Shown: piece by piece, positions 5,929 through 20,590 of the stretch | Layout: each line of letters opens with the position of its first letter | Position numbering within the stretch: the first letter of the stretch is position 1 | Source: Guillardia theta CCMP2712 | Lineage: Eukaryota > Protista > Cryptophyta | Reading direction: 5' to 3' | NCBI RefSeq assembly: GCF_000315625.1 | Contig: NW_005434562.1 | Coordinates: forward strand, 168,515 to 220,822 | Length of the DNA stretch: 52,308 nt | Notes under the pieces: model-generated | Told to the model about the DNA's origin: nothing | The model's input: only the letters and a program-made list of their open reading frames with translations | Databases searched by the model: none | Made by a program: the position numbers and the translations under genes

Positions 5929-6035
5929 CCTTGCAGGGACCTCCTCCTCCCCCTGTCCTCACCTTTGCTCCTTCTTCTCCTTCCTTCACTTTACACACAC
6001 AACTCTCCTCCTCTCCTCCTACTTCGCTCTCCTTG

Positions 6036-8097
6036 TCAACTCTGTTTCCGCGAGGACTTCGACGACGTCGCCAGCTGACCGCAAGCTGCCGACTGATCGT
6101 CTCCTCGCGTCACGCGCACGAAGCAGGCGAACCCCCGCTCATGATGTGCCGCTGGAACCTGCAGGTGGACGTCAGCTGGAGGGGTGCAACTCAAGTTCTC
6201 TTCCTCTCGATCCGGAGCCGCTGCGCCCTCTTGAACTCCTCCGTCCCGATGTCATTGTAGGGGATCAGATCCACACAGACCTTCAGCCCTGCCAGTACGT
6301 GGAACCTCAGCAGGCTTTCAGCTGGCATCAGAGCTGGACCTTGCTCTAGGAGGGGAGTGAGCAGCTTCATGAGCTGATCCGCTTGCTCGACCGAGTCATT
6401 GATGCCATCGATAAGCGTGACTGCCACACTTGTCATCCGCTCGCCTTGCTTAGCTGGAGGGACTTGCAAAGCTATTTCTCACCTGCCACCATGAAGGTCG
6501 ACATCTGCTTGCTCCTGCTCTTGAGCGCGGCGATGTAGGCCTGACTCGAGAGGGTGAAAGGGGGCGCGAAGTTTGTCAGCTCACGTCTCTCAGCTCGACC
6601 ATCGTGTTCGCCGTGGTGGGGACCAGCTTGGATCGGGTCCTGCACCAACGTCATCGTCTCCTTTCCCTCGCCGAGACTTGTCACGTGTCATCTGCTGCAT
6701 GCACCGACCATGCGAGCATCGCAGGGATCCCAGCAGCCGCCTGCTCGTCGACGGGTCAGCTGGGGACATGCTGAGAGAGAGAGCAGTAGACCCGGATGAC
6801 GGCAGGTGAAGGGCCAACGCTGAGAGGAGAGGAACGTCAGAAGTGGAGAAGAACAAGTCTCGACTTGCCTGGACACGGTCACGCGATTTTTCGCCATCTG
6901 AAAACAGTTTTGATCGGTGAGGACTTCACAAGCCTGACCAAGAGAGTCAGTGCCGGGGCAGGAGACACAAAAATGAGCAGGAGGAGAAAGCTCGAGTGCT
7001 GCAGCGGGTTGACGAAAATCTTCGTGGAGCAGGAGCACGAGTAGGGGCATGGACAGGGGCAAGGGCAGAAGCAGGGAAAGAGCAGGGGCAAGAGTAGGAG
7101 GCTCCGTGCCTTCTTGACGTTGACGAAATTGTTGAGCGGTTCTCCCATGCCCATGAAGACAATGTTGTGCAGCGGCGGCAGATTCTCTTCCTTGATGCAA
7201 CGGAGAGCAATGTAGACCTGAGACAAAATCACATGAAAAAGATCTCCCTGCTCTCGCTCACTTGCGAGAGGATCTCGTGCGAGGTCAGCTGGCGGATGAA
7301 TCCCATCTTGCCAGTAGCGCAGAAGGAACAGGCCCGATTGCATCCGACCTGGGCACACCATCACACTGCTGCTGTTGCTGCTGCTGCTGCTCCTCCTCCT
7401 CCTCCTCCTCGCCCTTCCTCTTCGTCTTTCTCCTGCCCCTGCCCCTGCTCGTCCTCCGCCTCTCCCATCCTCTTCCTCCTGCTACTGCTGCTGCTCCTGC
7501 TTCTTCTGCTCCTCTTCAATGTCTCTACCTGGCTGCTCACGCACAAGGTTGTGCGAGGCTCAACGACTGAGGCGGCGGTCGGTCTGCCTTCATGGGGTAT
7601 GACCACACTCTCGATCTTCGAGGACCCGTCAAGAGCAGTTGGAATGATGAACGAGGGGGAAGCGTGGGAGGGGAGGGGAACAAGACACGGAAAGAGGTAG
7701 GAAAGGGAGCAAGCGAGGGCAGGGGGAAGAGGAGGAGTGGGATGGTATACACCTCCATGCCGTCCTGCATGGCGATGAGGAGCTTGATGGTCCCACAAGA
7801 TGCTCTGGTGACGTGGGAGACTCGCGGGATCTCCTGGAAGTTCTCCTTCAGCTTCTTCCTCGCCTTCTCCGTCACTGTCTCGTCCGTCCATGGGTCCCTC
7901 CCAGCCCTGATGCTCGCCCATACCAACTTCGCTTTCCCAGTCCCTCCCAGTAGCTCCCCAAGGTCAGGAAGATGCTCAAAGACCGAGGGCCGCGGCGTCT
8001 GCACAAGAGCATCGGCATCGATCGCGTCTGCAGCCACTACCATCCTCATCGCGGATACACTCTCCTGAACGCACTCGGTAAGTCGAAAACCAAGGGT

Positions 8098-8131
<34 letters not shown>

Positions 8132-8316
8132 TCTTTCACCTGCTGTTTTGTCCTCAGACGAAAGCAGCTCGACACCTTCGGTCGCAGAGAGGAGAGGAGA
8201 GGAGAGGGAGAAGCTCGAAGCAATGGCAGGAGAACATTGTTGTAAGATTCGCAGAAATGAGAGAGAGAAACGATGAGGGCAATGAAGAAGGCTGGTGACC
8301 GACCGATCATTCTCAT
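6036..8316 (-). CDS. rlmN: RlmN/Cfr-family radical SAM RNA methyltransferase, probably organelle-targeted
   Basis: Spliced motifs [25 protein letters not shown] (CxxxCxxC), [34 protein letters not shown] and [12 protein letters not shown]. The N-terminus is hydrophobic ([16 protein letters not shown]). Confidence 0.92.
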
Positions 8317-9399
8317 GCTGCAGTGAAAGCATCAAAACAGACTCAATCAGAGCATCAGCTGATCGTTGTGATGACGATCATCTTCCCAGCCATATCCTGC
8401 TTTCTTCTGCCTGCTGTCACTTTGCGCCTGCTCCCTTATACTATTCATTGCTTACTCCTCTCATCTCCTCTTTCTTCTCTAAACCTGTCCGTCAGCCATC
8501 ATCTAGTCTATCTGATACCTTCTGCCATCTTCCCTTCCTTCTTCTATCGTCCCTACTCCACCACCACCACCTCCTCCTCCTCCTTCCATATGTCTGTCTC
8601 CTTCCATGCTGCTGGTTCACGTTTGGCCCCCGGTGCCTGCTGTCCTCCACTCCCTTCAATTCGCTTGATATGACTCGAGCTATTCGTATCTTGCTGCCCA
8701 ACTTCCTTGTTTTTCAACAGTCAGTTCAACCGTGAGTGCCGCGCGCGGCAGTGCGCGGCGCCGCGGCGGGCTCCGAAGGGGACCGTGCTGCCTAAGAGAT
8801 AGACTGTATGCTAGGATGTGAAACCCAAGCATCCAGACATGGGGGGACCTTAGCAAGACGGCTAAGAAGGTCTCCTTTTCAATCAGTCGAGCCTCTGCAA
8901 TGTAACTTCCGGACTCCGGGAGTCCGGCGTCTTGGTTTACAGGAGAGTTTTTGTTAACTCGGCGCTATCTGACTGGCACGGCTGGCCTACGATCCATCCT
9001 CCGCACTGTGTGACCCGGGCCGGGGCGGGCGTGTTACTTTTTCCAGTGTAGCGGTCGGAGGCTCGCCCGGGGGCCCGGCCGCCCACCGGCGGGGCCCGGT
9101 CCGACGGTCTGTGCTGACCGTTATATTAAGAAAGATCAGAAGGTAACGGACAGAAACAACATGGATGGGTAAGATGCATAGTCCATGGCGGGGAGCGGGA
9201 GGAGATGGGGAGAGAGAGCGCGAGAGAAGATGAGCGACGGAGATGCGAGCAGAAGAGAAGATGAATGAGGAGTAAGTTCAAGGGGAGTACATGCTTGAAA
9301 GGAGCCAGGGAAGCAGGATACGAGGCAGTCTTGTGCTGTCGTGTTGAGATTTGAATTTTTGATTTGTTACATTGGCTTCCCCTGTTTCGCTTGCATGAC

Positions 9400-10263
9400 A
9401 TGGTGTATCAGAGATCTTCTTGCTCTTGCTCTTGCTCTTGCTCTTGCCCTTTCTATCCTTCTGCATCTGAAGCTTCTCATCACTTCAGAAGCACGGAGCA
9501 GCGAAGCTTGCAAGACGATCAGCAGGACGCGGAGTCGAAGAAGCTCCCAACGCACATAGACGACAAGGTGTCTCGAAGTTCTCAACAGCTCCATGCATGA
9601 CTGACATGTGTGAACAGGACAAGAACGAGATCGGTGATGGCGATGATGCGTCGCCATAGCGTCGCTGGTAGGTTTCGCCATTGCTGACGATCACTCAGGA
9701 GGGGATGCTGTCTGGACACTGAGTACTGCGAAGCCTGGGAATGGTGTTGAGCAACTCAGGTGAGTTGGAGGAGAGCGACAGCGAGAGCGAGAGGTAGAGC
9801 GAGAGAGCGAGAGCGAGAGAGGGAGGAAGAGGTCGAGGGAGAGGAGGAGCAAGCTGAGACCTTGTTCAGAGACAACAACACGGACACCTACTGGCAGTCC
9901 GACGGGCCTCAGCCGCATCTAGTCAACATTCAGTTCCACAAGAAGGTGGAGGAGGGAGCAGGAGGGGGCAGACTGATGGGCTTGCAGGTGAGTATCAAGG
10001 AGATCGCGATGTACTGTGACTTCAAGTTGGACGAAAGTTACACACCGAGCAAGATATCGTACAAGAACATCTCTGTACCTTGTTCTTCTTCTGAAGTTTC
10101 TGCAGTATCAGGGCTGGAACACACTTCCATGACTTGCAGGTAGTCCTCCGCTTGCTCGTTGATGGCAGCTCACCGCCCTCGCAGGACGTGAAAGAAATCA
10201 ACCTGGAAGAGCCATGCGGATGGCTGACGGTAGCAATGAGTGAAAAAGATACTGCTGAGATAG

Positions 10264-10339
<76 letters not shown>

Positions 10340-11306
10340 TCCTCCTCCTCCTCCTCCTCCTCCTCTTCCTCCTGCTCCCTCTGCTCCTCTACAACCACCA
10401 CCTCTTCCATCACCTCTTCCACCACCTCCACCTGCTGCTGCTGCTGCAATGACAAGGCCGATTTGCTTCAGGTGCCGCTGAGCAGAAGAGATCTTGCGCC
10501 TTCGGAGGTGGAGGAGAACAGTGATTTCTCGTGTGACAGTAAGCGATTGTGTCAAGTGATGAATCACATGACTTGCCTGCAGACTCTCTCAGAGCTTTCA
10601 TGATTCAGATCGCAGTGCTTGCAAACCATGAGGTAAAACGATGTCCGTGTCTGAAGAGAAGAGAAGAGAAGAGAAGAGAAGAGAAGAGAAGAGAGAAGAG
10701 AAGAGAGAGAAGAGAAGAGAAGAGAAGAGAAGAGAAGAGAAGATATCTGATGTGATGTGATGTGATGTGATGTGATGTGCTGTGCTGTGATGTGATGTGA
10801 TGTGATGTGATGTGATGTTATCTGATGTGATTGAAGCAATGTGATGTATGATGCAATCATCTTCGAGAGATTTAGTGATGTATCTGTTGATATTCTTGCA
10901 AGTTCCTTCGGTGCGAGATGATCGATTGAGTTTTGATCTTCCACTCTCAGAATGGTCGAGACTCTCACATCCGTCAGATCAAGATCTACGGACCACGTCC
11001 TGTCGCCCCTGGTGTTGCCCTCCTCCTCTCCGCTCCTCTCCTCTGCTCCTCTCCTCTCCTCTCCTCCCTTTCATCCTCTCCTTTCCTCTCTATCCTCCCT
11101 CTCCTCTCCTGATCTCAATTCCTGTCCCTTTCTCTCCTGCTCCCCTCCACCACTCACTTCTCCTGCATACCTTCGCTCACCCGCTCCTCTTCCTCTTCCT
11201 CCTTGCATGCTGGCTGTAATCAAATTGGGCAGGGCTGGAGGGGCTGGAGGTAGGAAGCAGCTCGTTCTCGACACCTGAGTTCTCCTCCTACTCTTCGATC
11301 CGATGA
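9400..11306 (+). CDS. APC10: Anaphase-promoting complex subunit 10 (DOC1); start codon uncertain
   Basis: Exons [74 protein letters not shown] and [16 protein letters not shown]. The C-terminal IR tail FSSYSSIR* ends at 11306. Confidence 0.93.
10265..10830 (+). repeat. Intronic microsatellites (GCT)n/(CCT)n, (GAAGA)n and (TGATG)n inside APC10
   Basis: Visible runs at about 10265-10365, 10654-10741 and 10748-10830. Confidence 0.92.
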
Positions 11307-11534
11307 CCTCGTGCGCTAGTCGGAGAGGAAGGAAGAGAGAAGGGAGATTGAAGCCTGCAGGAGGAGAGGACAAGGTCAAGAAAGGCAGGACAGTACCTGC
11401 TGCAAGGAGTGTTCAATCTCAGGAGGAGGAACCGGGGAGGACGGGGACGGGGACGGGGACGGGGACGGGGACGGGGGTGTATCTGAATAATTTCTTGCTA
11501 ATTGGAACATGACAAGTACATTGTAAGATATTCA

Positions 11535-12003
11535 TCAGATGGTTGATGACTTGGCAGAAAGTCCTGGAAGCTCGTCAAGATGGAGAGATCGATTGAGAGA
11601 TCGAATGAGAGGAGGTGAGAGGGAAGGGGAGACAAGAGAAGATGCTGAGAAGATGGGAGGATGGGAGAGAATTTGAGAGGAAGAGAGGGCGAGGTAGGTC
11701 AAGGAAATCAGGGAAGGAGGGAAGGAGGGAAACAGGCGAGGGAGGGGAGGGAGGGACGAGGAGCGGGGGAAAGGAAGGCAGGAAGGGAGGGAGGAACTGT
11801 CATCGTACCCATCACGCGTCCTAAGGAGCTCTCGCGGTTCTCTTGAGCTCGCTTGTCTCCGAGGAACATCAACGAGCAGCGCGCGAGCATCTGCTGCTGC
11901 TCCTCCCTGGCGCGACTGAGAAGCTCCTGCCATGTCGGGCTCTCCTTCCTCCCTCGCGCGCTCTCCTTCGCCTGCATGGCAGTCAAGCGACCGAGGAGGA
12001 GAG

Positions 12004-12041
<38 letters not shown>

Positions 12042-15000
12042 GAGAAGGAGGCGGAGGAGGAGGAGGCGGAGANNNNNNNNNNNNNNNNNNNNNNNNNNNN
12101 NNNNNNNNNNNNNNNNNNNNNNNNNNNNNNNNNNNNNNNNNNNNNNNNNNNNNNNNNNNNNNNNNNNNNNNNGGGGGAGGATGACGAGGAGGAGGGGTAG
12201 AGGTGGTGGGAAGTTCTTACTTGGTTGCGAAAAGAGGAGACGACGGTAGTCCAATCGACGTCGGTAAGGAAGCTGCCGTTGACGCGCTGGACCCTGCTCC
12301 TGCCGTAGAGCATACCTCCGATCCTCTCCCCGTCGATCTTTTTAGGCACGTTGCTCCCCACCACGAACTTGTCTACTCCCGTGACCTCCAGCACTCGCTG
12401 CACCTGCGACTTCATCGGATGGTCCGGGCCGAGCGAGCGGATGTCGACGGAGAGGAGGAAACCAACTTGAAACCCGTGCGGGCGATCCACCAGCAGCTCG
12501 CAGCGACCCAGCCCTCTGTTGGTCGCAGACACGATGCAGAGAGCAGAGGAAGAGGCTGCGGATGAGGAGGAGGAGGAGGAGGAGGATGATGATGATGATG
12601 AGGAGAGGTTTTCGTTCTCGAAGTAGGTCTGAGACTGAGTAGCGAGCGACATGTTCCCGATTCTCCTCCTCACTGCCATCCTGTATGGATCTGTTGCTTC
12701 CTCGCTCCTCTCCTTGAGGGCTGGGCGCGTGTGCCCGAGCGGTGCCCACTCGTACTCCTTGCGGAGTTTACAGCAGGCGTTCAGTGCCTCCTTCTCGTAG
12801 CGAGCATGGAGGAAGCGGTCGGGAGCGGAGGAGGGCAGTGCTCCCCCGATGTAGTTGAGCACAGCGTTGACGTCCTCCTCGAATTCCTTGTCCTCCACCT
12901 CCTCCTCCCTGTACAACAAGGAGAAGCCTCGGATCGTCGTCTCCACTGCCATTGGCCACAGCAAGTGCATGACCCTCTGCGGGAACTTGGAGGAGGAGGA
13001 GGAGGAGGAGGTGGTGGTGGTGGTGGTGGTGGAGGAGGAGGAGGAGGAGGAGGGGACAGGGTTGAGTGTCCTCTCGTCCCCGGTCATGTTGGCCCAGTCG
13101 AAGAGGGCCTTGAGAACTTGAGCTCTGCTCCTCTTCTTTCCCTCCTCCTCCTCCTCCAGACTCGCCGCCACCTCCCGCAGACGCGAGATGTCCTTGCCAT
13201 TGTCGCGCCAGGAGGGGACGACATGGTTGAAGAGGGAACACCAGGTTCGCTCGGAGAAGAGCTGCTTTCTCCTCCCCTGCTCGCCGCCCTTCCCTTGCCC
13301 CTCCATCTTCATGCTCATCCTGTAGAGCTCCTGGTCCAACCTCCGCACGTGGAAGGTCGCGACGGGATCATCTTCTGCGGATGAAAGGAAGGGGAAGAGA
13401 AGAACTTTGACCTCCCGAAAGAAAGTTTTTAGCAAGGAGGAGGAGGCGGCTGCGGCTCCCCCCTTGCCTAACAAGTTGGAAAGTGTCGACGTTCTCCTAC
13501 TGTGATCTCAGTGACATGCACGTTTGAGCAAGCAGGAACTGAAGAGCACAGAGACGAAACTTCGGTAGAGGAGGAAGGGAGGGAGGGAGGGAGGGAGGAA
13601 GGAGGGAAGGAGGAACGAGAGGACTGTGTAGAGGTCACCTTGATTCATGGCACTTGAGGAACATGTCGGTCGCATGTTGCACGTCAAGCAGGTTTGATTG
13701 ATCTTTGCAGAAATTGCCGACGAGGAGCAGGGCAGGAGCATCGTGACCTGATCTCGCTCCCAAGCTCGCTGTCTGAGCCCAGCAGAGAAGTTTGCGGTAG
13801 GTCCGAGCAGAGAGAAGATCCTCTCCCGTCACCCACACCAGCACGTCCGAGGTCAGGTACCCGATCCTCGCCAAGTCCACCAGCACCACCTCCCTCCTCA
13901 GCTGGGAGAGGCTGCCTGGGTTGAGCTGAGAAATGCTGCTCTCGAGCTCCCACGAGGGATCCAGCAGGTCTCTTGCTCCGCCCTCGCTCTCTCCTTCCGT
14001 GTCGTTGAGGCGCACCGGCAAACACCTCCTTCCCCCTCCCTCTGCTCCCCCGAGTTGCGTCAGGTACGTCTGCAGCCCACTGGTCTTGCTGCCCATCGTG
14101 GTGGAGGACGAGGAAGAGACGGCAGTTGCTGTGGTGGAGGAGGCAGAAGAGGGGGCTGCCGGTTGTCCCATCCTCATCCTCACGTGAAGTGGAAGTTCGC
14201 CGAGCTCGGGGAGGATGGCGCGCGAGTCGTCGGAGAGAGGATGGAGGAGGAGGAGCTTCCTGCAGAGAAAGCTCTTCCCCGACCCACTCCTGCCCATGAA
14301 CGTTATGGTCTTGCTGGGAGCTTTCCTGGACAGCAGCTGGGCTTGTCGAAGCGCCTCCTGCGGGACAGAGAGGTCGACCTGTATGTGGCGATCTTCTTGG
14401 CGGACTGAGAAGTGAAGCAGCGTCTGAGCTCCGATGCTCTCTGGCTGCATGCTCTGTGGGAGAGTGAGATTCGAGAAGATGGTGTTGTAGCACAAGACGA
14501 GGAGTGGAAGACAAAAAGGAGGAGGAGGAGGAGGAGGAGGAGGAGGAGGAGGAGGAGGAGAAGAAGGAGGAGAAAAGGGAGGAGGAGAAGAAAGGAAGAG
14601 GAGAGTAAGGCTGAGGAAAGGCCAAGGAGGAGGCGGGATTGTGGAGGGTTGTATGGGAGAGGTAAGGGGATGAAGGGGATACCGCAAGAATCTTGGGAGG
14701 GAAGAAGTTTGCGATCCAAGCTGGGAACATGCCATCTTCTTCCTCGTCCTGCGGCTCCTTGCCAGGGACCCCAGCGCTCTCCTCGACCATACGAGCAAAG
14801 GCCTTAGCTGGAACGAACTGCTGCCCACCCGTCGTCCGGGGTAGTTCCCCTCCTGCCATCTCCTCGAGTTTCGCCTTGAAGTTCGCGATGTTTGCGCTGG
14901 AAACGTCAAACTCTCCGAACAGTCGCCTCTCCCCCTCCACGACTTCTTTCCCTTGCTCGCTGCCTCCTGCCTCCTCCTCTAGCGCGCTCAGAAGGTCGTC

Positions 15001-18000
15001 CAAGAGCAGGTGAGGGTAGAAGAGCTCGTGCTCCCTCCTGCCCGCCGCGTGCCGATGCCAGAAGAGCTTTGCGCTGCTGGGCAGCAGCCGGATGGGCACC
15101 GGTACATCAAGGAGGAGGCCGTCAGGGGGCGGGCCCGAGTAAGGCATGAACGGCTCCTCGTGGGGCTGAGCGATGCGGCGGGAGGAGCGGGAGGAGGAGA
15201 GGAAGGGAGCTTCCACTCGTTCGAGGTAGCAAGCGTGGTGGAGGAGGTCCGGCGTCAGGTCCTTCCCCCGACACTCCTCGGGGGGCGATCCCCGCACGAT
15301 GACGGAGGAGGAGGAGGAGACGAAGACGATCTCATGGACGCCATGCAGAGAGTTCCTGCGGGCGACGGAGCCGAGGAAGACGGAGACGAACATGCCTGTG
15401 AGCAGGTCGTGCGGCTCCTTCAGCTGGATCAGACACCGCTCCTCCTGCCCGTCGTCGGAGAACAAGGAGGATACAGAGACGATCATGTAGCGCCGCGTCT
15501 CCTCCGCCTTGAACGGTTGCGACAGGTTCACGTCCAGGGCCGGAGGCTCGACGCCCTTCAAGCGTAGGAGCGTTATCTCCATTCTTGCTGGGCTCCTGCT
15601 GAGCAGCAAGGCCCTGACCTCCTCGAGAGTCTTGTCTTGTAACGAAACGGAGTCGAGGGAAAGCAGCTGGTCCCCCAGCAGGAGAGCGGCAGAGAGATCG
15701 GCGACGCTCCCCCGAATGATCTCCTGAACCACAAACGGAAACTCGCTGCCCAACTTGAGGCCGAACGCTCTCCTTCCCTCCACCTCCACGCTCGTCGTGA
15801 TGATCTCATAGCCCTCTGGGGGCCAAACTTGAGGAGGAGGAGGAGGAGGAGGAGGAGGAGCGGACGAAGGAGAAGTCTGATCCGAAGCAATCTTCTTCCT
15901 CTTCTGTCAACGTCGTCATACCATCGCCAAACGGCAATACACTCAACATAAATTCCATATCATGATCATGATCATGATCATTTGTATCATCGTCATCATC
16001 AATCTTCAGTCTCACCATCGTCATCTTGTATCTTTCCTGGAGCATCTGCAGCTGCTTCTGCCAAGCTAAATTTCTGCCAAATCGTCAGACAAACACCTCA
16101 TCCATCTTCCTTCCCTCCTCGCTCCCCTCCCCCCTTCATCCCCTCCTCCCCTCCTCCCCTCCTCCAACATCATCCAAGTCTTACCTCCTCCACCATCGTT
16201 GAATCTTCAAGATAGCAAAGGACTTGTTGACTACTTTCCTCATCTCGCCGTATCGTTTCATGTCAACTGTACGCCGCAAGCTTGCCTGCCACCATTTCTC
16301 ACTCATTTGGACTGCTCGACTCGGCTCAAGTCTCCTCGACCTCCCTCGCCCCCTTCTGCATATTTCCGTCCTCCTAGTTTCTCTTCATTCATATGCTTCT
16401 GCCCACTGGTATGCTTTCGCCCTCTCCCCTCCCTCCTCTCTCCTCCTCCTCCTTTCTCCTCTCGTCCCTCTTCCCACCTGTAGCGTTGCAGCATACGGAT
16501 TGAGCTCGAGCTTGCGGATGAGCTGCAGCTGACCGAGACGACCAGCAGCGAGGAAGAGCATGGTTCTGCCGAACTTGAAGCTTCCCTTCCCTCCGCTGAG
16601 AGGAACCCAGTCCTCCGGCCGGCTCACCACCGACCCAACTGACTTCCATTCCTTCCTACGAAGCTCCTGCAGGGTAGAAGATAGTAAGGGAGGAATCTGG
16701 GAACAAGGGACGAGCCGAGGCGAGTTTAAGATGGAGGATGTGGAGGAGATCATGCTGGGCTAAAGAAAGAACAGGAAAACGAGGCGCGGAAGTGTGGAGA
16801 GACGACGACAACGTCGAGGAGGAGAAGGAGGCGGAGAAGGAGGAGGCGGCGGCAAAGGCGGAGGAGGCGGAGGAAGAGAAGGAGGGGGAGGCGGAGGAGG
16901 AGGAGTGGAGGAGGAGGAGTGGAGGAGGAGGAGGAGTGGAGGAGGAAGCGGAGGCGGAGGCGGAGGCGGCGGCGGAGGAGGAGGACTTACCTCGAAGATC
17001 TTGGTTATCCCCTCGCGGGGGTTTGAGGGAAGGGAGGAAGAGACTATTTCGCGCGTCCAGAGAGACTTTAATATGATGCTGAGGGAGTCTGGTAAGGGAG
17101 CAGTTGAACAGGGGAAGAAGATGGAACGAAGGGAGACATAGAGTTGAAAGGGTAGAGGTACAGGAAGAGGTAGAGGAAGAGGAAGCTAATGAGAATATTT
17201 GATTACCTGAGATCCATGCCATGTCTGCTCCAAAGTTCCTCATACGTGTATCTTGTTGGCAGACCACCAGCCTGTCAGAGGCTTGAGGGGAGGGGAGGGG
17301 AGGAGAGACAAAGGAGGGGAGGAGAGAACAGTCACGGGCTGTGAGATTGACCTGTGCGAGTTTGACGGCCTGCACGACGCCGTTACTTGACAACTGACCT
17401 GCGACTTTGGCTCGTTCGAACATCAGCGACCTCTTGTGATCGTTGGGTTTGACGCATCGCACGAAGTGCATGTGCGTGTCTTCCAGCGTTGGGATCAGTC
17501 CCTTTCTCTGCCTCCCGCTCCCCATGCCCGCGTCTCGTTCCTCCACCAGCTGGCGCTTGAAGGTTCCTGCAACGGTCTGCAGCTTTGACCTGACGGATGG
17601 ACTTGAAGTCACTTTGTCTGCTAGCTTCCCTGCTCGTACAGGAGTAGAAAACTTCTTATCCTCGTCGTTTTCATTCTCTTCCTCCATTCCGAGGCCTCGA
17701 CGGATCAGCGAGTAGGCCAGGGCATCCTTGACGCCTCCGTCCCCCCCCCCGGCTGTATCGGCGACGAGCATGCGGAGGAAGACGTGGCCTTTGTCGATGT
17801 TCTTCTCGATCATGTGGTCGATACAGTACTCCACGTCATCAGCATAATGGGTGATGACGAACGAGTTGGAGGTTGGGAAGAACCGCCGCTCGTCCCCCTG
17901 CCACATCCTCTCGTCTGTCTTCCCGTCCTTCTTGTACTTGTCGTCCTCCTTCCGTGTTCTACGAAGCACATCGATGAACTCCTTCCCCATCTTGTCATAC

Positions 18001-20590
18001 TCGTCTCTCCTCTCTGCCTCTCTGCAGAAGTCTGCGAGCTTGGAGAACGTCGTCTCAATCCATCGGAGCGCCAGCAGACTCTCCTGGTCCAGCTGCACAT
18101 CAGGCATGTCGTTTCCTTCGAACTCGCTCTCATACAGCTTCTTATCAGCCTCCAGCACCTTCTTGTTGAACAACACTTGTAGACTTTCATTGGCAAAGTT
18201 GATGCAGAGCTGCTCGAGGCTGTTCGCCGACATCCAGCACTTTTGGTGCTTGTCGTAGAAGGAGAAAGACTCGAAGCCGAAGATATCGAGGAGCCCGATA
18301 GAGAGAGAAGAGGAAGCGGAGGAAGCTGCATCCTGCTCGTTCTCCCTCACGAGCTCCATGTTGACATTCTCCCTCAGCCAGGAGAAGAGCTCGCAATACA
18401 CGAGCTTTGCAAGCGAGTCCCGGTTGTTCGCTGCTTGACTGGAGTTGAGAGGTACCCGACCAAACATGCTGTCCTCCTTCTTGATCGTCAGCGCCTCCTC
18501 GAGCTCAGCCGACCCACATTGAACCACATGTGCCGCATCCTCTAGGAACTGTCGGGAGCTGGAGGTCACTCGTGCCCATGGCGTTCCGCTCTGAACCTCG
18601 TCTTCGAACTCGAGGTTGCCGAGGAGGAGGATGAAGGAGAGGATCCGAAAGATAGCAAGGAGATCTTCCGCCATCCCCATCTCACAGATCGCAGTCTGCA
18701 ACATGTTCCACTGCTCTGCCTCGCTCAGGTTCCCCTCGTAGGCATCTTCTGCCTCGAAGGTCCCCTGCTCACCTCCGAGGAACTTGTACTCCTTCATCTC
18801 TCGCAATCTGAGTGATCTTCTCGTGCTCTTGTCCTGCAGCCCCGCCAGCATCATGTAGAACACGTGGAAACTTCGCTCTCCCTTTGACTGGAACGTGACT
18901 CTCGATTTCTCCAGCAAGTAAGTCTGTACTTGAGCCCCTTCAACCGTCTCCCCGCTGCTGTCGAAGCAGAGCTCTAGGTACTTGCCGAACCTGCTTGAGT
19001 TGTCATTCCTCAGCGTCTTTGCATTCCCGAAGGCCTCGAAGATGACATTATTCATCGTGATCTTTCCCACCAGAGACTCTGCTCGTTTCCCTCCCTCTAT
19101 GCTCCCTCCCTTGTTCTTGTACATTCCTGAAGCAACCTCCACAATGTAGCAGAGAACCTCTCGGGCTGACTTTGTCTTTCCTGCTCCACTCTCTCCGCTG
19201 ATCACCACCGACTGGTTCTGATGCTCTGCACTCAGGTTTCTGTACGCGTTGTCTGCTACCACAAACACGTGCGACCTCACACCTTGCTGGCGTGTGTTTC
19301 CTTGCAGACTCGCATAGTATCGCCGCACCTCCTTGTCGTACATTCCGATGGGATGGTCGTAGCCCGGTACAGGCATGTCAAGATGCTTGTACGGGTTGAC
19401 AGCTAAAAGCATGTTTCCGATGTAGCTGTAGATCTTCTCAGACAGAAAGCGGAACTCAACGTTCTGTAGGAGAGACGGGAGGTGGATCTTAGTCATCTCA
19501 GTGAGGTCTTCGTAAACCTTGTTCTCGTCAAAGGGCAGGAAATGAGCAAGCACGTTCGTCTCTGGTTTCATCTTGGCCTTCAGGGTTCCCATCTTAGGTA
19601 CGCTGGAGATGTTCCCGTTCATGTCAACAACATAAGTCTGGTCTTTCTTGATTTCCTTTCTTCCCATGATAGCCCAGGCATTCAGCTCGTGGCGAGTGGC
19701 TTCTCTCATTGCGATGTATCTGCTCTCCTCTTGCCTCAAGGCGTCAGGAAAGGAATCCAGCATCTCATCCAGCGTTGCAAACCCCAGGGATGTAGCAAGC
19801 ACGTCGTCGAGGGAGTGCTCTGACTTGTCCTTAAAAGCTGCCTGCAACCAGCAATGAAGGGCAGTGAGACTAAGACTGCCATACCTGAAGAGAGGAAAGC
19901 TTCATCCCAGATGGGCTCTCCTGTAGGATCTTACGAAGACATTGCTTGACCCCATGGAAAATATCGTCGGAATTTTCTACTACTGCGCTGACCTGTTGGA
20001 TAACACTATTTTAGCTTCAGGTTCAAGAAGCCTTGCCAGTAGCTTCTCACCTTTATCTTCTGCGGGTCGTCAGTCTCTGCGTTCTCTATCGACAAGACTC
20101 TTCGCTTTGTGTGCGCTATGCAGACGTCATCCCACGCCCACAGAAAGAGCGGCTGAGAGTCGAGGGACTTGACCCTTGACTTGAGCTCAATCACTTCATG
20201 CTTCTGCCAGTTCCACCTCTCCCGCTTCCCTGCCCGGATAGCATCATCCTTGCTCGTAGCTTGAGCGACCCTCGGGTGAGTCTTGCGGGGCATCAGAGGA
20301 GAATCAGCGAACGAAGGCGCTTGAGGCTTCTTCTGCGCGCACAGGGTGAACATCACCGTAGCGAGCAAGGCTATTACTGACACTCGATGCTCGTTTCGCC
20401 ATCTTCGCGGCAAGCTCAGACTCCGCGCCATTCTACGCATGAAGTCAGACAAGGGCGTGCGGCTCCCTTTCAAGGATCCTCTCGTACCATCTTGCCAGTC
20501 CAACAAACTTCGTCCGGTGAAGCGCTGCGCTCTTTCAAGCCATCCAAGCCCCTTCGCGCCTCCTCGGCCAACTCTGTTAAATCTCTCCAT
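11535..20590 (-). CDS. Giant multidomain myosin: LOTUS/OST-HTH - motor - 2xIQ - polyPro - PDZ - GB1/RHD3-like P-loop GTPase - C-terminal tail (ends approximate)
   Basis: Motor motifs GESGAGKT, NDNSSRFGKY, LLDIFGFE, EQLCINFANE, HFVRCVKPND, GLPTRYTYEE and FKFGRTMLFL. IQ motifs AATLQASLRR and AILKIQRWWRR. In-frame GT-AG splicing leads into PDZ (FGLKL..GDQLLSLD) and then GRSGSGKS/DTEG. Confidence 0.8.
12073..12172. other. Assembly gap (100 N) within a repeat-rich, probably intronic stretch
   Basis: N run flanked by (GAG)/(GAT) repeats. Confidence 0.99.

Follow-up and report, generated by a model that had tools for sequence, protein, structure and literature searches.

The 52,308-nucleotide stretch of DNA analysed here (the window; positions 168,515 to 220,822 of the forward strand of contig NW_005434562.1 of the cryptophyte Guillardia theta CCMP2712) contains, between positions 11535 and 20590, what is probably one minus-strand gene encoding the heavy chain of an unconventional myosin (about 2,380 residues). 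In the predicted protein, a myosin motor is followed by a PDZ domain and then by a nucleoside triphosphatase (NTPase) domain of the GBP/atlastin type. We consider it very likely, from comparison with homologous sequences, that all of these parts are fused into a single gene in this genome. The same comparison supports the predicted order of myosin motor, IQ motifs, PDZ and P-loop domain in one polypeptide. The myosin motor, the PDZ domain and the GBP-type fold are already known; the evidence supports as new the architecture of the myosin tail and a divergent GBP-like branch.

An exhaustive HMMER search of 1.84 billion representative proteins, using as query exon 10, which encodes the core of the tail G domain, returned ten matches in total. 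The best lies at residues 1615-1863 of P0001, a 2,296-residue protein that also has a Myosin_head domain (225-951) and a weak PDZ match (1216-1280). Three more full-length relatives (P0013, P0022 and P0023; 2,310-2,342 residues) are environmental proteins, as is P0001. The spliced model of the window's gene is collinear with P0001 over residues 119-1203 at 56% identity and over residues 1240-2267 at 33%, and across all four proteins the identities are 54-56% and 33% for the same two segments. The first ~118 residues of the model are not conserved, with homology beginning at residue 119 in the comparison with P0001 and at residue 82 in that with L002, a more divergent relative described below. 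In a multiple alignment with the homologs, the junctions of exons 2-11 all fall within conserved, gap-free sequence. Because this alignment is continuous through every one of these junctions, the spliced path is more than chance.

On L001, a metagenome contig of 127,087 nucleotides, a single unbroken open reading frame (ORF) of ~6.9 kilobases at 6001-12891 encodes P0001, in the form of P0011, a nearly identical protein of the same cluster. It runs from the motor through the neck, PDZ and G domain into the tail, most of which it includes. Introns occur just 3' of the ORF, where exons corresponding to the last segments conserved in the window's gene lie at 13212-13343 and 13742-13846, and L001 is therefore genomic eukaryotic DNA. 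The 2,296-residue ORF falls short of the complete protein, since after VQVSG it continues into an intron that is followed by two or more further exons. It follows that the C-termini of the database proteins P0001, P0013, P0022 and P0023 are artefactual. The second relative, L002, is a more divergent contig of 23.8 kilobases with a 1,649-residue myosin ORF, a G-domain ORF 72 nucleotides further on, and then a tail ORF. Jointly these ORFs are collinear with model residues 82-2238, and the change of frame lies close to the window's intron 9. A preliminary description, made from the letters of the window and a list of its ORFs, had proposed a single polypeptide containing myosin, PDZ and GTPase domains; the uninterrupted ORF of L001 and the collinear ORFs of L002 bear this out.

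The gene model has 13 exons on the minus strand, running from 20590 to 11535, and 12 introns of 43-324 nucleotides, all GT-AG (Table 1). Exon ends were fixed by script after reading the three minus-strand frames. When joined, the exons create one open frame of 7,146 nucleotides encoding 2,381 residues, in the order non-conserved N-terminus, LOTUS-like segment, motor, two IQ motifs, proline-rich linker, PDZ, ~70-residue module, P-loop NTPase domain, and conserved tail with a second copy of the module. A stop codon stands immediately upstream of the putative ATG. The separate ORFs of this region thus join in frame through canonical splicing, as had been proposed, and the junctions named at that time are present: AATLQ/ASLRR (16478|16285), IQRWWR/RNL (16185|16073), KMTM/KRKKIAS (16016|15903), PKILA/SMQPES (14683|14453) and CHES../..RRTSTL (13639|13499). 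In the last of these one residue is ambiguous, as exon 11 has tandem acceptors, CAG and TAG, at a distance of three bases. The late-motor junctions that had been considered doubtful are placed at 17352|17271, 17207|17078 and 16991|16666. Exon 5 could also be read from another acceptor in a different frame (RLPQHHIKVSLDAR...), but that version was rejected because it failed to align with the orthologs.

Table 1. Features of the predicted myosin gene (window coordinates).
Feature	Position	Strand	Remarks
Whole gene model	11535..20590	-	13 exons, 2,381 residues; collinear with P0001, P0022 and P0023 over residues 119-2267
Exon 1	20051..20590	-	Putative start codon ATG 20590; conserved segment FLWAWDD 20146-20126
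Exon 2	19885..19992	-	First half of LOTUS/OST-HTH-like segment; from alignment with orthologs
Exon 3	17352..19841	-	End of LOTUS-like segment, then myosin motor core
Exon 4 (AGGLPTRYTYEELWSRHGMDL)	17207..17271	-	Aligns to AAGLPTRYSYDELWDRKGMDL of P0001
Exon 5, late motor	16991..17078	-	Sole frame and acceptor aligning with P0001 (GVVLRAHWRR...REGMEQLL)
Exon 6	16478..16666	-	Converter FKFGRTMLFL 16579-16550 and start of IQ1
Exon 7	16185..16285	-	IQ1 and IQ2; aligned to P0001
Exon 8	16016..16073	-	Short basic/helical linker
Exon 9	14683..15903	-	Proline run, PDZ, repeat module A, linker; 33% identity to P0001 over whole exon
PDZ domain	15556..15834	-	Ortholog profile against PDB
Repeat module A	15235..15440	-	~70 residues, around EPHDLLTGMF
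Intron 9	14454..14682	-	CT-rich; L002 changes frame at equivalent point
Exon 10	13639..14453	-	G-domain core
G1, GRSGSGKS	14294-14271	-	G-domain motif, exon 10
Switch I, KTSGL	14087-14073	-	G-domain motif, exon 10
G3, DTEG	14003-13992	-	G-domain motif, exon 10
G4 position, LLLVGNFCKD	13730-13701	-	G-domain motif, exon 10
Exon 11	12221..13499	-	End of G domain, conserved tail, repeat module B; collinear with P0001, P0021 and L002
FFREVKVLLFP	13423-13391	-	Exon 11, end of G domain
Repeat module B	~12505-12300	-	~70 residues, around RPHGFQVGF, in exon 11
Assembly gap	12073..12172	.	In presumed intron 11 (12220-11972); donor GT 12220, AG 11973-11972
Exon 12 (tentative)	11809..11971	-	GT-AG splice sites and open frame only
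Exon 13 (tentative)	11535..11563	-	Stop codon at 11535; splice sites and frame only

The introns are strand-asymmetric tracts of low complexity (e.g., 16990-16667, 14682-14454 and 12220-11972). The combined fraction of C and T is 0.75-0.85 in eight of the 12 introns, two others are GA-rich at 0.20-0.22, and the exons range from 0.36 to 0.59. ORF-based gene calling fails in this region because of these tracts, which probably also caused the assembly gap near the 3' end of the gene.

Motifs of the tail P-loop domain are spread across exons 10 and 11, and GRSGSGKS, KTSGL, DTEG and the FF-to-FP segment sit where the preliminary description had located them. We aligned nine members of the family, which have 23-40% identity to the window. 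The P-loop G/G/K, D-x-E-G, a helix-strand pair containing Arg and Asp, and P-x-L-x-x-V-x-N are invariant in all nine. The switch-I threonine (T-S-G) is also found in nine of nine rows, and a strand of FFxxVxVxxxP type occurs in the members extending that far. The family also has a distant member that occurs as a stand-alone protein, P0010 (a 768-residue ORF from a EukProt transcriptome), with a G4-like NKATD motif. Its cysteine-rich C-terminus recalls a zinc finger or RING, a pairing that resembles RNF112, in which a RING accompanies a GBP-like domain.

Structural comparison was based on an AlphaFold2 model of the contiguous tail of an ortholog rather than of the window's spliced protein. The mean predicted local distance difference test score (pLDDT) of this model was 43.6; the G core scored 55-86, and the region after the G domain scored below 40 and is uninterpretable. 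The top 50 Foldseek matches in the PDB were all GBP1/2/5, atlastin-1/3, RNF112 or SMG9 (expectation value, E, 3e-6 to 3e-4). VIA-align, which is independent of Foldseek, placed GBP2, atlastin-3, GBP1, SMG9, atlastin-1, SMG8-9, fly atlastin and Sey1p in its top nine, with Z of 11.3-13.4 over 200-269 residues, whereas other GTPases reached Z ≤10.4 over ~150-205 residues. Searching by shape in the Atlas returned clusters of GBP/MMR_HSR1, SMG9, plant GBP and ZFYVE1. The corresponding language-model feature search, in which the query was the window's own exon 10, scored 0.95 to GBP, MMR_HSR1, atlastin, RHD3 and SMG9 clusters. Together these searches support a G-domain fold that appears closest to GBP, atlastin, SMG9 and Sey1.

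The PDZ domain, which had been placed at ~15560-15790, is substantiated by a profile built from five ortholog sequences. This profile matched solved PDZ domains with a best E of 1e-9, and the best 60 of the 265 distinct chains found at E ≤1 were all PDZ proteins. Taken alone, the window's PDZ falls under Pfam cut-offs, at 21.4 bits versus 27 for PDZ_6 (E 2e-4) and 19 versus 23.2 for PDZ. The carboxylate-binding loop (GLGF-type, x-Phi-G-Phi) reads FGLKL in the window at 15765-15751 and GFGLQI in the orthologs, with F, G and L invariant. Downstream of the PDZ, a module of ~70 residues occurs twice, with one copy before the NTPase domain and one after it. Ortholog alignments of modules A and B matched each other in hhalign with a probability of 90% (E 1.7e-6), and the module corresponds to no Pfam family.

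The motor itself is unambiguous: the largest ORF (16656-19847) matches Pfam Myosin_head at 437 bits (E 1.2e-130; cut-off 33.3), and a search of the PDB with the motor exon gave 150 myosin sequences at E < 1e-20. Myosins typically carry GESGAGKT as P-loop, NxNSSRFGK as switch I and DIxGFE as switch II. The ATPase motifs of the window are intact, with P-loop GESGAGKT at 19196-19173, switch I NDNSSRFGK at 19007-18981 and switch II DIFGFE at 18287-18270. Solved structures from myosin classes II, V, XI, I and VI match the motor about equally (E 8e-78 to ~1e-69), and hence it has no obvious class affinity. After the converter, two IQ-like patterns, LQASLRRTVDMKRY and IQRWWRRNLAWQK, can be read directly in exons 6-8 and are conserved in the orthologs. 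The orthologs have a charged helical insert of 62 residues after the neck, at exon 8, whereas the window's protein has no coiled coil there. No hydrophobic segment indicative of a membrane span was found outside the motor core in the modelled protein.

Intron 2 interrupts a segment resembling LOTUS/OST-HTH domains that lies just N-terminal of the motor (19992-19885 and 19841-19680, minus strand). The top PDB matches of its ortholog profile were the LOTUS domains of TDRD7, at E 0.011 and 0.041. In the orthologs, the segment matched Pfam OST-HTH at E 0.002 and DUF7515 at E 2e-4, both under the curated cut-offs. A LOTUS domain N-terminal of the motor is plausible given these similarities.

The 3' end of the gene is interrupted by the assembly gap. 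Exon 11 ends at FRNQ followed by GTAAGA, and the gap begins 47 nucleotides further on in a CT-rich tract. The CT fraction in the non-N part of 12220-11972 is 0.77, which resembles the eight other CT-rich introns of the gene. The corresponding exon of L001 extends a few codons further before its donor site (ATFADK|GT), and P0021 ceases to match there too; an intron at this point is accordingly conserved. The nominal 100 N leave both sides in frame by read-through and by splicing alike and carry no information. Given the composition and the intron in the homologs, it is unlikely that the gap is read through as coding sequence. Exons 12 and 13 found no match in the homologs, and their placement, like the frame and continuity of the gene through the gap, is tentative. 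All identified domains lie upstream of the gap, and the finding is therefore independent of it.

We weighed three alternatives against a single motor-PDZ-NTPase gene, starting with the possibility that two genes are present. Here, the myosin gene would stop behind the IQ exons, and the PDZ and NTPase domains would belong to a second gene, or the NTPase domain alone to one starting at the Met of SMQPES, with the in-frame path being a relic or coincidence. The ORF list does give separate ORFs, and there is a Met two residues into exon 10. Searches of protein collections found no long product of the locus, the best exon 10 match being 41% identical. The splice junctions of this genome are drawn from homology, not from transcripts. 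Three sequencing runs, likely transcriptomes, contained 0.74-0.76 of sampled words, and 0.79 would be expected if only exons were present. This is soft evidence in favour of a single gene: the run types were guessed from run sizes, and the word share fits spliced RNA without proving any junction. A further point against our interpretation is that the C-terminus beyond the gap may hold a lipid or membrane anchor. However, all 12 introns are GT-AG with the frame kept, and the domains are read through in a single ORF of a homolog and collinearly in L002. Sequence is also conserved right up to each junction from either side, and this includes the linker that precedes the G domain (FPAWIANFFPP versus YPAWLATYVPP). 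We therefore judge two separate genes to be highly improbable.

The other two alternatives concern the tail domain, which might belong to another TRAFAC lineage (Ras/Roc/Rag-like or septin/AIG1-like), with its likeness to GBPs stemming from insertions and a poor model. Several results weigh in this direction and against a GBP/atlastin assignment. The ortholog-tail and exon 10 models are both of low confidence (the latter with a mean pLDDT of 44.8), and TM-scores are low, at 0.2-0.5. The model of exon 10 alone ranks SR-beta, RasL12, RagD, Rab28 and Arf6 first in VIA-align (Z 8.7-9.9, within 7.4-9.9 overall), not GBPs, and matches Rag, G-alpha and Rab in Foldseek. In Pfam, the window's tail exons gave generic P-loop matches only, with neither GBP nor RHD3_GTPase at E up to 10, and one of nine family members gave an insignificant GBP match (E 0.28; 10.8 bits versus a cut-off of 21.1). 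Searching PDB sequences with phmmer and the family profile returned P-loop matches only (NadR, HerA, Der and ABC proteins), and word-indexed searches for homologs, run with the family profile or the distant member P0010 as query, found nothing bridging to annotated GBPs. The family also lacks the RD form of G4 and has V-x-N with an acidic residue instead (NFCKD in the window); the window's LLLVGNFCKD recalls LVGNKxD, and P0010 has SNKATD. On the other side, the complete ortholog domain brings GBP, atlastin, SMG9 and Sey1 into the whole VIA-align top nine, with longer alignments, and this clade into the whole Foldseek top 50. Both Atlas searches point to GBP, RHD3, SMG9 and ZFYVE1 clusters, and the exon 10 model stops short of the domain's final strand and helices, which lie outside that exon. 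The order GKSFL, T-x-G, D-x-E-G, strand, FFxxVxVxxxP, which we take to parallel that of GBPs and atlastins, also counts against another TRAFAC lineage. We consider such an origin unlikely. It is rather doubtful, if less so, that the domain is a pseudo-enzyme, that is, a scaffold comparable to the SMG9 G-fold, with or without bound nucleotide, whose only role is protein interaction. This possibility draws on the missing RD motif, on the appearance of SMG9 among the best structural matches, and on the missing P-loop arginine finger, the third position being Gly in the window and Gly or His in all members. In GBPs and atlastins, G4 is conserved as RD and the finger occupies the third P-loop position (Arg48 of GBP1 and Arg77 of atlastin-1; PMC5084822). 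Yet the P-loop G/G/K, D-x-E-G and the switch-I Thr are kept across all nine members despite their low identity, which is unexpected for a dead site, and the example of DFCP1 demonstrates that ATPase activity is possible in GBP-like domains whose base contacts are altered.

Taken with these alternatives, the GB1/RHD3 GTPase tail of the preliminary description is supported at the level of the fold. A P-loop GTPase fold, which had been set out as a check, was found even with the window's exon 10 alone, which by itself does not select the GBP clade. Fold and learned features fit the GBP/atlastin clade, whereas a significant Pfam match to GBP or RHD3, the RD motif and the arginine finger are all absent. 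Because the RD motif and the finger are absent, GTP use and hydrolysis are predictions, and the label GTPase is presumptive. For this reason we use the name GBP/atlastin-type NTPase domain, very divergent, in which the nucleotide used and its hydrolysis are predicted only.

Comparison with known systems highlights what the predicted protein shares with each. The G domains of GBP, atlastin and Sey1/RHD3 are the best structural matches to the ortholog tail domain, and share with it a GxxxxGKS P-loop followed by F/Y-L, the switch-I Thr, a D-x-E-G G3 and a hydrophobic FFxxxxxxxxP strand after G4. Unlike them, the window's domain has no significant sequence-profile match, V-x-N in place of RD at G4, and Gly in place of Arg as third P-loop residue. 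The window's tail is also without the helical domain and CaaX box of GBPs and without the transmembrane hairpin of atlastin and Sey1, and the domain sits in a myosin tail. DFCP1/ZFYVE1, RNF112 and SMG9 are similar in that a GBP-type fold is one module of a larger protein, and all are among the best matches. However, their partners are FYVE, RING and SMG8/SMG1 binding, respectively, and none is a cytoskeletal motor.

Among myosins, class XVIII has an N-terminal PDZ and a myosin coiled-coil tail restricted to Holozoa (PMC3942036). It resembles the window's protein in combining a motor and a PDZ in one chain. In contrast, the PDZ here is C-terminal of the neck, there is no Myosin_tail match, and an NTPase domain follows. 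None of the 11 myosins of Guillardia theta was reported to have an identified domain (PMC3942036). As in these orphan myosins, the motor is without clear class affinity; unlike in them, a PDZ and a GBP-like domain are present, both under Pfam cut-offs, in a gene that far exceeds the length of a motor-only model. Broad myosin classifications (PMC3942036, PMC5583752) mention no GTPase domain in myosin tails, and a full-text literature search found no myosin-GBP fusion. The architecture had been described as one not recognised among standard myosin classes, with which both classifications are consistent.

How the parts might work together can be proposed from their known relatives. The motor would move or anchor on actin, with its two IQ motifs predicted to bind light chains, and the PDZ would bind the C-terminal peptide of a cargo, receptor or other partner. 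The tail NTPase domain may dimerise head to head across the nucleotide site, acting as a nucleotide-dependent switch like GBP1, atlastin and DFCP1. Motors would thereby be paired or clustered, or cargo tethered, in a nucleotide-controlled manner. For GBP1 and atlastin, it is an established mechanism that the G domains dimerise across the nucleotide site (PMC5084822). The GBP-like domain of DFCP1/ZFYVE1 is an ATPase that dimerises with nucleotide (bioRxiv 10.64898/2026.05.27.728090). DFCP1 thus combines nucleotide-dependent dimerisation with altered base specificity through its use of ATP, which implies that base specificity in the GBP-like fold can change. The proposed dimerisation switch fits the window's protein because it has neither a coiled coil after the neck nor a membrane anchor in its modelled part.

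Tails largely define myosin classes. The published claim that the 11 Guillardia theta myosins have no identifiable tail domain is overturned for at least one gene, in which the tail domains were missed because low-complexity introns split the gene and both domains fall under Pfam cut-offs. The tail domain represents a small and very divergent branch of GBP-like NTPases. As this branch is without the RD motif and the arginine finger, it offers a natural test case for base specificity and catalysis in the fold, and the architecture suggests the testable idea of nucleotide-controlled pairing of a motor. It is possible, although speculative, that the gene founds a new class of myosins with members in several poorly sampled protist lineages, and that in this class the tail NTPase domain replaces the coiled coil as dimeriser and nucleotide switches the protein between monomer and dimer or cluster. 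If so, actin-based force would be coupled directly to a tethering or remodelling module of the dynamin superfamily.

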